From NCBI GenBank assembly GCA_002269645.1, contig NIVC01000013.1, forward strand, positions 868,001 through 932,000: 64,000 nucleotides of DNA, in the 5' to 3' direction. The notes under the pieces are model-generated. The model had not been told where the DNA came from. It saw only the letters and a list, made by a program, of their open reading frames with translations, and did not search any database. The DNA comes from Macrostomum lignano (lineage: Eukaryota). Below are positions 6,733-18,664 of the stretch, in pieces; the stretch's first letter is position 1, and every line of letters starts with the position of its first letter. The position numbers and the translations under genes were made by a program.

Positions 6733-7565
6733 TCACTTGGCGTGCACAGTGGTGGAGTGCATTAGCAGACTGTCCGATCTGATGAACCGCATGCCGCACA
6801 CTTCGCATTGGAAGGGTTTTTCACCCGAGTGCACCATCTTGTGATAGTTCAGACTGTACGATTGGCTGAATTTCCTACCGCACTCGTTGCATTCGTAGGG
6901 TCGCTCACCGGTGTGCAGTCTTGAATGACAGGTGAGCTGACCTGAGCTAATGAATCGTTTGTCGCACACTTTGCACTGATAAGGCCGTTCACCAGTGTGC
7001 ACTCTAGTGTGAGTGCTCAACTGACCAGACAGAGCGAACCGCTTGTTGCACACGTTACACTGGTAGGGCTTTTCACCCGTGTGCGTCCGTACGTGCGCCC
7101 TTAGACCGCACGCGTCGGCGAATGATTTGTCGCAGTGCTGGCACTTGTGCGGCGTCTCCTTCCGGTGCACAGCCGCGATGTGACCCTGCAGATGGCTCAG
7201 CCTGGTGAAGCCTTTCTGGCAGGTATCGCACTCGAACGGCCGCTCGCCGCTGTGCACTCTGATATGCCGTCTTAGATCGCTCTTCCACATGAAGCTTTTC
7301 TCGCAGTGTTCGCACGGGTAGCGCTTCTTTGCTGCCGAGGAATTATCTTTAGCCTTCTTAGGCCGGCTTGAAGCCTTCTTCCTGCTAGACTTCGCTGTCG
7401 AATGTACCTCCGTTGGTTGCGTCTCTTCCTGTTCGCCATCTTCCAACGAGTTCCTGGTCGATTCTTCGTCGGGCAGTGGAGCAAGCCGGGACGGGCCAGC
7501 ACCCGATTGCTGCTGTTGAGTCGGCTGAGCTTGATTAGCGGCCGCGTAACGTCGCTTGGTAGGAA
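6733..7565 (-). CDS. C2H2 zinc-finger gene 1, terminal exon (exon A; 7 fingers)
   Basis: Acceptor tttttag|TT at 7565 in phase 1 of ORF 6733..7599; seven C-x2-C-x12-H-x3/4-H fingers with TGEKP-type linkers; stop TGA. Confidence 0.9.
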
Positions 7566-7646
7566 CTAAAAAAATGAACGCTACACTATATCTAAGCACA
7601 AATTGGAGTTAAAAATGTAATCTGAGCTACAATACAAGCGTCTTAC

Positions 7647-8435
7647 ATTTGTGCCGAATTGAATGGTAGGTGAGATGGCTGGACAATCGGAACTGCTTGC
7701 CGCACACGTCGCATTTAAAAGGTTTTTCTCCGGTGTGAATTCGCCAATGCTTGCTGAGATGGCTGGAGTTTCGGAACCTCTTGCCGCACACCTTGCACGG
7801 GAACGGACGCTCCCCGGTGTGACTCCGGATGTGGACGTTCAACGTGCCGCGGTCGGCGAAGCCTCTGCCGCAGTACTGGCAGCAGAACGGTTTCTCCTTC
7901 TTGTGCACCCCGTTGATGTGAATTCTCAGGTGGCTGGCCCGCATAAACCGCTTGTCGCACAGTTCGCAGGGAAACGGCCGTTCGGCGCTGTGCACTCGCT
8001 GGTGCTTCTCCAGGTCGGCCTCGTTAGAGAACGTCTTGACGCAGTGGCCGCATCGGTAGCGAGGCTCCACTACAGCTGGTGGGACAGCATTGAAGCTGGT
8101 ATTGCTAATGCTATCAGCTGGATTAGCAACCACCAACCCGTTCTGAGCTGACGCCACTGTCATTGCGGGCATGCCGTTGAGCACGAAAGTGTTAATCTCT
8201 TGCTGGCTGGGCATTGGAACACCCGATTGCCCAATAGAGACCGCATTGGATGGGCCCGGCTGGTTGGCATCGTGCGCCAAACTGTGCCGCTCCTCTACGC
8301 AACCAGGATCTGAATCGCAGTCGTCTTCGTGCGAATTGTCTTCCAAGTCTCCAGAATAATGCGCCTCATTATTGGGAAGATTTAGGACCTGCTCCTCAGT
8401 GTGCTCTGTGCCTTCGTTACGAGCGGCGGCCTGAC
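7647..8435 (-). CDS. C2H2 zinc-finger gene 1, exon B (5 fingers)
   Basis: Donor CAC AAA T|gtaaga at 7646 (phase 1). Acceptor catccag| at 8435 (phase 1); an alternative in-frame acceptor lies at 8516. Confidence 0.85.
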
Positions 8436-8577
8436 CTGGATGTATAATATATTTCACTCTGTTTGAACTAAACAAAAAGTACGAGCCAATCTGTATAATA
8501 ATGCTGTCGATAAAAACTAAGTACAGTTTTAAAGAAACGATATAGATTAGAACAATGAAAATAAATGGTGAACCTAC

Positions 8578-9303
8578 GTTTGTGCTGCCTCGAATGATAG
8601 GCAAGATGACCGGACAGCCGGAACTGCTTGCCGCACACGTCGCAGTTGAACGGTTTTTCACCAGTGTGCAGTCTGGAATGATTGCTGAGATGGCTGGAGT
8701 TTCGGAACCTCTTGCCGCACACCTTGCACGGGAACGGACGCTCCCCGGTGTGACTCCGGATATGGACGTTCAACGTGCCGCGGTCGGCAAAGCCTCTGCC
8801 GCAGTACTGGCAGCAGAACGGCTTCTCCTTCTTGTGCACCCCGTTGATGTGGATTCTGAGGTGGCTGGCCCGCATAAACCGCTTGTCGCACAGTTCGCAG
8901 GGGAACGGCCGTTCGGCGCTGTGCACTCGCTGGTGCTTCTCCAGGTCGGCCTCGTTAGAGAACGTCTTGACGCAGTGGCCGCATCGGAGACGCGATTCAA
9001 TCGTAGAAGCGCCAGCTCCGGAGCTCGGTCCATTCGGCATAGCAACGGAGCTCATTAACTCGCCGCTGAGTACGAAACTATTAATCGCACCTGCTGGCAT
9101 CATCTCGGACACGTACAAAGTCTCTAGCAGGTCTGGCACAAGATCGCTATGATTTGCTGCACTTGGTTGCAGATCCGGTATGAAGTGTGGCGGCGGCGGC
9201 GGCGGCGGAGGAGCGTTCGGCATATGAAAACTCGACTGATGCGGCTGCGCGTTGGGGACGTAAAATGCTGACGCAGCTGTCGCTTCATTGTGCTGCACGT
9301 TTT
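8578..9303 (-). CDS. C2H2 zinc-finger gene 1, exon C (Pro-rich leader + 5 fingers)
   Basis: Acceptor atttcag|AA at 9303 and donor CAC AAA C|gtaggt at 8577, both phase 1. Confidence 0.85.
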
Positions 9304-16133: not shown

Positions 16134-16949
16134 CCTTGCTATGCCGCCTCAGATGATAGTTCAGATGGCCAGACATGCGGAACTGCATGCCGCACAGATG
16201 ACACTTAAACGGTTTTTCGCCCGTGTGAATCCTCGAATGGGTGCTGACCTGGCTGGAGCTTTTGAACCGTTTGCCGCACATCTTGCACTGGTAGGGCCGT
16301 TCGTCCGTGTGCTTGCGAATGTGCACGTTGAGCGTGCCGCGGTCGGCGAAGCCTCCGCCGCAGTACTGACAGGTGAACGGTCGCTCCTTGTTGTGCACCC
16401 CGGCAATGTGGATTCGCAGATGGCTGGACTTCAGGAACCGCTTGTCGCACATGTTGCAGTGGTAGGGCCGGTCGGCACTGTGCACTCGCTGGTGCTTCTC
16501 CAGGTCTGCCTGGCTAGAGAAGGTCTTAATGCAGTGAGCGCATCGGTAGCGAGTTATGATTACAGGCGCGCCCGCACTGTAGCTACTGCTAGCCAGATTA
16601 GCCTGCGGCGGCGGTCCGTTCTGCATCACCGCCGACATCTGCTGGTCAGCAGCGCCGCCGCTGATTACAAAATTATTAACCGGCTGCTGCTGATGGCTAG
16701 GCGGCATCGCGCCGGCTGACATCATTTCAGACACGTAGAGTGTCTCTAATAAATCTGGCATCAATTCGCAGTTGTTAGCTCCGCTAGGCTGCAAATTTGG
16801 CATGTACTGCGCCTGCAGCGGCGGTTGTGGCGGCGGTGGCGGCGGCGGCGGCTGTGGCGGTACATTTTGCACGGCGGAGAAATTTGCTTGCGGAGGCGCG
16901 ACAGGAGCGTAATAGATTTGTACTGTAGGCTCGTTGCGGCGCACGTGGA
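16134..16949 (-). CDS. C2H2 zinc-finger gene 2, exon G (Pro-rich leader + 5 fingers)
   Basis: Acceptor ttatttcag|TC at 16949 and donor AGC AAG G|gtgagt at 16133, both phase 1. Confidence 0.88.
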
Positions 16950-17098
16950 CTGAAATAAGATTTACACCGATAGTAGCAGCACAGCGATTAATTACTCGTA
17001 GAAGACCCTCTATACACAGTCTTTCTTAACTTCTCAAGGCACATACTTTATCGCACATACAGCGCCCCCTCCCCTAGTCACCAGCCGGAGAACGCCCT

Positions 17099-17389
17099 TC
17101 TATATTATTCGGCCAGGTGTGCAACCGACAGCTCAGCCGCAGCGATTGCGCGACGCATCTGAAGGCTGCGTACGGCTGTTCAGTCCAAGGACTGGGGGGT
17201 CACCACACACACACCCTCAAATACCCCAGCTAATGCTGGCACCCTTTTACAGCTGGGACAACCGAAGCAATGCAGAGTTAAGCGCCTTGCTCAAGGACAC
17301 AAATTGTTCCGAATGAGTCGAGGATCGAACCCTCAACCTTTCAGTCGTAAGTCCAACGCTTTTAACCACAAGGCCACAACACTCTTAGG
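17099..17389 (-). mobile_element. CORE-SINE, second copy, in intron 1 of zinc-finger gene 2
   Basis: Reverse complement aligns over its full length with 5157-5455 (tRNA head, CORE, shared 3' end ...GGCTGAGCTGTCGGTTGCACA). Confidence 0.85.
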
Positions 17390-17461
17390 CCTAGCACCAA
17401 ATACAAAACCCTTTCTGAACCGTAGTAAGTAAAACTTCACACAAACAATGGGATTTCTTAC

Positions 17462-18664
17462 CAGTTTTACTCTTCAAATGAGAGAACAGAGTGCTAGACT
17501 GGCTAAACCGCTTGCCGCAAACGTTGCATTGAAACGGTTTCTCTCCCGTGTGCAGCCTGAAGTGCACCCTCAGCTGACTGGACAGATTAAACTTCTTGTG
17601 GCACACTTTACACTCGTATGGTTTTTCGCCCGTATGAGTTCGAGTATGAACTCTCAGAGCGCTCGGATCGGCAAATGCTTTGTCGCAGTGCTGGCATTTG
17701 TGCGGCTTCTCCTTCTTGTGCACTGCGGCCACGTGACCCTGCAGGTGACTGGGCCGGGCAAATTTTTTTGGACACTCCTCGCATTGGTAGGGCTTCTCGC
17801 CGCTGTGCACCCGGAAGTGAACCTCCAACGCCGCTTTCCATCGGAACTTTTTACCGCACTGCTCGCATTCGTGTTTCTTTACGTCAGTTGACGACTTTTT
17901 TCTGCCGCCACCGCGGCGGCGGCGACGGGCATCGCCTGAGTCGCTCTGCTGCTCAGATTCGTCCTTGTGCACCGCTTCGATGTGCCTTCTCATGTGAGCC
18001 CTCTGTGTGAACCGTTTCTGACAAATGTTGCACTGGAACGGCTTTTCTCCGCTGTGCACCCGTTTGTGTACTGTTAAATTTCGTTTGGAGACAAAAGATT
18101 TGTTGCACTGTTCGCATTTGTGACGCAAATTCGCCGATTCACCATCGTTGAGGGGCTGCTATCGCTGTCTGACGAGCTTGAATCGGTTGATTCGTCTTTT
18201 GTATCATTGCCTGCCTCTTCTGCATCTTCTTGATCTGCCTCCTCCTCATCCGCGTGCTCTGCCTCTTCTTCATCCTCCTGTTCTGCCTCCTCTTCATCCT
18301 GCTCTGCCTCCTCTTCATCCTCCTGCTCTACCTCTTCTTCATCCTCGTGCTCTGCCTCCTCCTCATCTTCGTGATCTGCTTCTTCTTCCTCAACCTCTTC
18401 CTCTTGCTCTGCTGGCATTGTGTCCTCATGCGGCTGACTTCCCGACTCATCTAAGGAGGTCTCAGCCTCGTGTTGCCCTGTCTCTTCTGAATCTTCGTTA
18501 ACTTCAGAGTTGCCTTCATCATCTTCCTGAACGGCTTGCTCTGGTTCGCTGCCCCGATCAGGCGACTGCTCAGAGTGATGTTGCAAGTTCTCTGCAGTTT
18601 GAGATTGGCTACTCAATAATACCGCAGATTCGTTTGGGGCTGCCGCCGCTCCGTGCAGCTCCAT
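17462..18664 (-). CDS. C2H2 zinc-finger gene 2, first coding exon (exon H; acidic leader + 6 intact and 1 degenerate finger), with a 1-nt frameshift near 18152-18155
   Basis: ATG 18664 (MELH, homologous to gene 1 start). Acidic ORF 18074..18721 and finger ORF 17391..18128 are one base out of frame. Donor AAA ACT G|gtaaga at 17461. Last finger ends HLKSK, lacking the second His. Confidence 0.75.

Follow-up and report, generated by a model that had tools for sequence, protein, structure and literature searches.

Introduction

Lola-type loci consist of constant BTB-coding 5' exons and mutually exclusive 3' terminal finger exons, each of the latter with its own stop codon and poly(A) site. In IKZF1 (Ikaros), internal finger exons are skipped, which yields isoforms with 3 or 2 fingers instead of 4 (PMC12896614). 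Tandem duplication within genes is a source of symmetric exons encoding partly disordered modules (PMC3632108). Here we describe a locus of eight homologous C2H2 zinc-finger exons from Macrostomum lignano, contained in a 64,000-nt stretch of DNA (hereafter the window; assembly GCA_002269645.1, contig NIVC01000013.1, positions 868,001 to 932,000 of the forward strand). The eight exons, or cassettes, are lettered in the direction of transcription as D-C-B-A (gene 1) and H-G-F-E (gene 2), and we consider it probable, at roughly 0.72, that they make up a tandem pair of paralogous, lineage-specific four-exon poly-C2H2 genes built from duplicated symmetric exons.

The locus shares with Drosophila lola, broad and other BTB-zinc-finger loci the presence of several exons each encoding a different finger set. 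The likeness to lola and broad drawn by an earlier sequence-only reading could not be maintained, since cassettes C, B, G and F have no terminator of their own and no BTB domain accompanies them; the cassettes are internal and arranged in series, with a stop codon only in the last exon of each gene. A nearer analogy is IKZF1, because the internal finger exons of the locus are likewise removable in frame. The IKZF1 isoforms are documented, whereas the exons described here are near-duplicate five-finger arrays known from genomic sequence alone. The fingers of the eight exons conform to the Krüppel-type C2H2 definition and, as in ZNF850, Xfin and XlCGF-like proteins, they are tandem C-X2-C-X12-H-X3-4-H units with TGEKP-type linkers, grouped in several clusters set apart by disordered linkers. 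Unlike those proteins, whose arrays lie in one large exon, the locus has its arrays spread over four exons and carries no KRAB, SCAN, BTB or ZAD effector domain: Pfam searches with the D N-terminus, the B and A leaders and exon C returned none of these families (PF01352, PF02023, PF00651 and PF07776, respectively). Finally, adjacent homologous exons of the same phase are also found in tandem exon duplications (PMC9013439) and in symmetric-exon modules (PMC3632108). Many tandem duplicate exons are mutually exclusive, whereas the lengths of those at this locus are multiples of 3, so that their joint inclusion is also in frame.

Architecture of the locus

The list of open reading frames (ORFs) revealed eight long ORFs carrying C2H2 fingers between positions 6733 and 18721 of the window, all of them on the minus strand, as are all features of the locus given below. 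A regular-expression scan of all six frames detected 51 intact fingers across the eight exons, and no C2H2 fingers of this kind in the rest of the window. Per exon, the intact fingers were 8 in D, 5 in C, 5 in B, 7 in A, 6 in H (plus 1 degenerate), 5 in G, 5 in F and 8 in E.

Gene 1 would start with exon D (10130-11183), which opens with an ATG at 11183 and encodes an acidic, Ser-rich leader followed by fingers arranged as 2, a spacer and 6, up to a phase 1 donor (CTG/GTGAGT, with its G at 10129; the slash marks the junction). Intron 1 (9304-10129; 826 nt, 39% GC) separates it from exon C (8578-9303; phase 1-1), whose polyproline leader carries the motif PDLLETLYVSEMM. Then come intron 2 (8436-8577; 142 nt, 29% GC, donor GTAGGT) and exon B (7647-8435; phase 1-1), with an acidic leader that includes the motif EINTFVLNGMP. 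Intron 3 (7566-7646; 81 nt, 32% GC) has an in-frame stop inside, and the terminal exon A (6733-7565) encodes a basic, Gln-rich leader and ends with its fingers and a TGA at 6733-6735. In gene 2, exon H (17462-18664) has its ATG at 18664 (MELHG), a long Glu/Asp-rich leader and an array whose degenerate finger reads HLKSK. It is followed by exon G (16134-16949; phase 1-1), with a leader orthologous to that of C, by exon F (15147-15962; phase 1-1), with a (QQH)n leader that includes the motif EISNFVLNSMP, and by the terminal exon E (13937-14961), in which a leader and eight fingers precede a TGA stop. Stop codons are therefore present only in A and E, C, B, G and F ending without a stop at phase 1 donors. 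The two genes are separated by a spacer of 2.75 kb (11189-13936), with an 18-bp minisatellite at 11448-11982 (535 bp) and AATAAA or ATTAAA hexamers at 13280, 13276, 13262, 12918 and 12136.

The coding lengths were 1054, 726, 789 and 833 nt for D, C, B and A, and 816, 816 and 1025 nt for G, F and E; each of the internal exons C, B, G and F (726, 789, 816 and 816 nt) is divisible by 3. Joining of D, C, B and A produced a single uninterrupted ORF of 1133 amino acids (aa). The clean joined reading frames expected for both genes were thus obtained for gene 1 and failed for gene 2, where the H leader is out of frame with the H fingers in the assembled sequence.

Two repeats were observed within the coding leaders, both on the minus strand and both probably variable in allele length. 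One is a microsatellite in exon F (15749-15892), where (CAG CAG CAT)n is translated as (QQH)n, and the other a 24-bp repeat, rich in Glu/Asp codons, in the region of exon H that encodes the N-terminus (18211-18405).

As regards the splice sites, GT was present at all six donors (7646, 8577, 10129, 15146, 16133 and 17461), and AG preceded all seven acceptors (7565, 8435, 9303, 14961, 15962, 16949 and 11188), mostly after a T-rich tract. The exon lengths place every junction in phase 1. The splice motifs published for M. lignano are GT[G/A]AG for donors and [T/C]TNCAG for acceptors (PMC8629364), and 5 of the 6 donors matched the former. All in-frame GT/AG pairs lying between the finger arrays of consecutive exons were then enumerated. 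The proposed pair fitted both motifs in 4 of the 6 introns, and in D>C, G>F and F>E it was the sole in-frame pair to do so; in the H>G intron one other in-frame pair fits the motifs, but without a pyrimidine tract. Coincidence is therefore not enough to account for the sites. The GC content was 29-49% in the introns and 49-58% in the exons. As far as the DNA allows us to judge, the exon/intron structure is real. The architecture put forward by the sequence-only reading, namely two tandem four-exon genes in which every exon consists of a leader plus 5-8 fingers and all 13 named splice sites are canonical GT/AG sites joined in phase 1, was borne out by the splice sites, the exon lengths, the finger counts and the joining of the ORFs.

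Duplication and concerted evolution of the finger arrays

A common core, HL..H...VH.KE.P..CQ.C...FAD...L..H, was recognised in all eight cassettes, which supports their descent from one ancestral exon. The arrays are of two types, long in D, H, E and A (up to 2 + 6 fingers) and short in C, B, G and F, whose five fingers are the homologues of fingers 3-7 in the long arrays, and in each gene the exons follow the order long-short-short-long. C and B, as well as G and F, are adjacent, homologous and all of phase 1-1, as in tandemly duplicated exons. The uniform phase 1 of the locus is the necessary outcome of duplicating a single symmetric exon (1-1): the six junctions go back to one or two ancestral junctions, of which they are paralogous copies, and do not represent six separate coincidences.

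Identities were calculated on the 134-aa five-finger core. Within genes, they reached 94% (aa) and 93% (nt) for C and B, 92.5% and 92.8% for G and F, and 81% and 85% for H and E, whereas positional counterparts in the two genes were only 73% (C-G), 73% (B-F), 75% (D-H) and 67% (A-E) identical. Likewise, the synonymous divergence (Ks) of the short arrays was 0.21-0.25 within a gene versus 0.70-0.77 between genes. In self-BLAST, the tracts of high identity ended where the finger arrays end. The putative conversion tract of B (7644-8056) is 93% identical in nucleotides to 8575-8987 in C over 413 nt, and covers exactly the five-finger array plus 2-3 nt of intron; that of F (15137-15559) is 93.4% identical to 16124-16546 in G over 425 nt; and that of E (14085-14453) is 88.4% identical to 17512-17880 in H and comprises fingers 3-6. 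Outside this last tract, fingers 1-2 of H are 65% identical to those of D versus 53% to those of E.

The leaders told a different story from the arrays. The C and G leaders were clearly similar (z = 22.9; shared PDLLETLYVSEMM and MS.V..NGP), and so were those of B and F (z = 9.2; shared EI..FVLN.MP), while the leaders of C and B (z = 0.8) and of G and F (z = 0) were no more alike than shuffled sequence. Greater likeness within than between genes, sharp tract ends and positionally orthologous flanks are the marks of gene conversion, and together they indicate that the arrays of C with B, G with F and H with E have probably been homogenised by intragenic conversion, the leaders having kept their positional orthology. 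The ratio of nonsynonymous to synonymous substitution (Ka/Ks) was 0.09-0.28 in 11 of 12 pairwise cassette comparisons (for A-H, Ks was saturated and the ratio not computable), which showed that the finger arrays have, to judge by these ratios, been under purifying selection. We regard this clear case of intragenic concerted evolution as the most noteworthy feature of the locus.

The most economical history of the locus is as follows. An ancestral four-exon gene would have arisen by serial duplication of one finger-array exon flanked by phase 1 introns; the whole gene would then have been duplicated in tandem, its phase 1 boundaries being copied with it; and the arrays would have been repeatedly homogenised within each gene by conversion, under purifying selection, the leaders staying positional. 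By default, constitutive splicing would be expected to give one long multi-cluster DNA-binding protein per gene, of 1133 aa for gene 1 and of about 1286 aa for gene 2 if its frameshift (see below) is an assembly error. Presumably these proteins bind DNA through several finger clusters, of which the two near-duplicates would recognise the same motif or a repeated one.

Some points weigh against this picture of two functional four-exon genes. C would likewise resemble B, and G resemble F, had the short exon been duplicated separately in the two genes, a scenario that only the orthology of the leaders disfavours. That all four exons are used constitutively is assumed here. Finally, given the frameshift and the degenerate finger of exon H, gene 2 may be non-functional in this haplotype.

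Domain content and database relatives

In Pfam searches, exon C scored 92.9 bits with PF00096 and 97.1 bits with PF13465, and beyond C2H2-type models it gave one sub-threshold DUF5810 match lying beneath a finger. The D N-terminus and the B and A leaders matched no Pfam family at E<=0.01. Among the matches listed, the closest to the 1133-aa gene 1 protein were generic poly-zinc-finger proteins of no more than 51% identity, and a 402-aa query across the D/C and C/B junctions again yielded, among those listed, generic poly-zinc-finger matches of no more than 51%; identity to non-Macrostomum proteins was at most about 50% and restricted to the fingers. No spliced or unspliced product of the locus was present among the matches listed, although short fragments scoring below about 266 bits may escape this search. 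None of the ORFs D, E and F had an exact counterpart in the protein collection, and the literature, when queried for reports of C2H2 expansion in Macrostomum, yielded nothing specific.

When a profile of the finger-free C and G leaders was compared with 1.84 billion representatives, one significant protein was retrieved, UniRef100_A0A1I8JPS6 (E = 3e-17), which is listed in UniProt as a Macrostomum lignano 'C2H2-type domain-containing protein'. About 77% of its residues fall in exact blocks that are collinear with 18664-15146 and are distributed across all three frames. Some exons of the model fall inside the intron between H and G, and one of its junctions links G finger 4 with F finger 2; because of this frame-hopping and these misplaced exons, we take it to be an ab initio prediction on an indel-rich assembly. 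A0A1I8JPS6 is thus a gene model of gene 2, and through this single, error-ridden database protein the window is assigned to M. lignano or a very close relative, an assignment with which the splice motifs agree. The model starts an exon at 16949, but, hopping as it does through three frames, it (P0242) was rejected as evidence of splicing. A second M. lignano entry in UniProt, P0014 (1117 aa, 'XlCGF57.1-like'), consists of four near-identical leader-plus-finger cassettes with the HxxxxH-KEKPHKC core seen at the locus, and is 51% identical to cassette A. P0014 was among the matches to the 1133-aa gene 1 protein. This suggests either further cassette-type zinc-finger loci elsewhere in the genome or tandem genes fused by the predictor; zinc-finger genes built of cassettes would accordingly make up a small family in M. 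lignano. Both database models are unreliable.

Integrity of gene 2

The ATG at 18664 (MELHG..., homologous to MELHE... of gene 1) and the acidic leader of about 180 codons that follows it lie in another frame than the H fingers. A one-base shift within 18128-18157 is needed to connect them, the likeliest spot being cgg cga att tgc at about 18128-18140, and insertion of one A allowed gene 2 to be read as 1286 aa. In the last H finger HLKSK replaces H...H, so that the final His, a zinc ligand, is lost.

Gene 2 could have turned recently into a pseudogene, or be a null allele, of a functional gene 1, which would account for this 1-nt frameshift between leader and fingers, for the missing second His and for H having one finger fewer than D. 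We nevertheless hold it to be unlikely, if worth keeping in mind: apart from the shift, the frame is uninterrupted through all four exons (about 3.8 kb), the G-F and H-E comparisons give Ka/Ks of 0.2-0.28, some 180 leader codons before the shift contain no stop, and the shift itself falls within short homopolymers (cgaatttg). Such indels abound in the older M. lignano assembly behind A0A1I8JPS6, which makes an assembly error no less likely. As causes of the frameshift, an assembly error and a recent null allele are about equally plausible.

Two introns that might bridge the H frames were also considered. The first (18622 to 18018, 605 nt) would keep the frame, yet its donor, GTATTA, departs from the consensus, and its removal would delete finger 1 and half of finger 2; the second (18331 to 18156, 176 nt) has no pyrimidine tract and sits in the normal acidic coding repeat. 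Both were discarded as unlikely.

Can the cassettes be mixed and matched?

The sequence-only reading had gone further and proposed that the phase 1 cassettes are alternatively included or skipped, and that gene 2 donors are also spliced to gene 1 acceptors, to generate combinatorial DNA-binding arrays. The arithmetic behind this proposal is sound: any internal exon can be dropped, and any gene 2 donor can be joined to any gene 1 acceptor, 11188 included, in frame, and on translation the skip isoforms D-B-A, D-C-A and D-A were all open. Precedents exist as well: in other genes, exons duplicated in tandem are frequently subject to alternative use (PMC9013439), and symmetric exons that undergo alternative splicing form a recognised class (PMC3632108). 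Moreover, M. lignano makes polycistronic pre-mRNAs (PMC8629364), which renders a transcript covering both genes conceivable.

The phase symmetry, however, is explained by descent, and the uniform phase says nothing for combinatorial use. Of the 20 residues predicted to contact bases (at helix positions -1, 2, 3 and 6), only 2 distinguish C from B and 1 distinguishes G from F, and therefore skipping one of them would alter the number of arrays but hardly the specificity, so that little would be gained by it. The introns are short (81-826 nt) and have consensus sites, as is typical of constitutive splicing. E ends in a stop with no donor downstream, gene 2 is frameshifted, and the 2.75-kb spacer exceeds the 1-kb repeat-adjusted criterion used for M. 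lignano operons (PMC8629364), unless it is mostly repeat. All considered, we judge combinatorial use of the cassettes improbable; mix-and-match would matter only if transcripts show it.

The acceptor ahead of the gene 1 ATG (11184-11200; tttgcattccAG/CTCTG, with the exon starting at 11188, 5 nt upstream of the ATG) deserves separate mention, as its phase 1 register had been counted in favour of the combinatorial proposal. A phase match at an untranslated acceptor is a 1-in-3 event and means little. The site, TTCCAG (...gcatTCCAG/CTCTGATG), agrees with the spliced-leader acceptor motif [T/C]TNCAG, and no obvious cis donor was seen upstream of it. Spliced-leader trans-splicing affects 30% of M. 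lignano genes (PMC8629364), and the motif-conforming acceptor 5 nt before its ATG is what gene 1 would have in common with them. Most likely, then, the predicted 11188 acceptor receives the 35-nt spliced leader or a 5' untranslated exon, which speaks against its being a target of gene 2 donors.

A variant of the combinatorial proposal would make 11188 a contested site: when taken by the spliced leader, two proteins would be produced, and when taken by the phase 1 donors of gene 2, fusions of up to about 45 fingers, with the skipping of near-duplicate cassettes tuning the number of copies of the five-finger array. If true, this would be a combinatorial model of the dosage or spacing type and not of the specificity type, but we consider it very improbable. 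Least tenable of all is the notion of eight separate zinc-finger genes with one exon apiece, which we rejected: every cassette does have its own leader and fingers, and E and F have an ATG close to the start of the ORF, but A, B, C and G have no ATG upstream of their fingers, the ORFs open exactly at a pyrimidine-tract AG and end a few codons past a consensus GT at paralogous positions, only the A and E stops are not intron read-through, and the GC content falls in the gaps between ORFs.

Other features of the window

The M. lignano genome is repeat-rich, and the density of minisatellites in the window is in keeping with this. They are unusually dense, with units of 18-50 bp and 7-44 copies each, and many spurious long ORFs result from them. 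In the first half of the window they were located at 1-149, 890-1686, 11448-11982 (the spacer repeat mentioned above), 19431-19895, 20423-20827, 31676-32422 and 34296-34778, and in the second half at 52706-53539, 54035-54450, 57096-57807, 59753-60628, 61395-61730, 62215-62558 and 63146-63741. In addition, about 6 kb at 21595-27616 are occupied by an (ATAG)n-like microsatellite of about 1500 units (87% match), with extreme GC and AT skew.

A multi-exon sugar-transporter gene (SLC2/GLUT-like, Pfam Sugar_tr) lies on the minus strand at 32374-41430; its ORFs at 40522-41430, 34868-35488 and 32374-32847 correspond to Sugar_tr profile positions 6-87, 134-308 and 305-434, and the sole database relative of a sugar-transporter exon was a Logan fragment of 58% identity. 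On the plus strand, an ORF at 55232-55738 matches the C-terminal part of Pfam ODR4-like (E = 2.6e-14) and is probably one exon of an ODR-4 homologue, and an ATG-initiated ORF of 233 aa at 49495-50196, with weak, sub-threshold matches to a PHD finger and a FLYWCH finger, may represent a zinc-finger gene of transposon origin or a domesticated one. Neither the Rfam scan nor the tRNA scan of the window gave a match.

Significance

The locus by itself reveals no new regulatory mechanism, and is of mild interest for the evolution of the zinc-finger family outside vertebrates. The public models of this locus are severely defective, and the gene models given here should be of use in the annotation of the genome. 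If the latter are right, the locus exemplifies the assembly of a long multi-cluster zinc-finger protein through duplication of a single symmetric exon, and shows how gene conversion may hold finger arrays near-identical within one protein while the linkers between them diverge.

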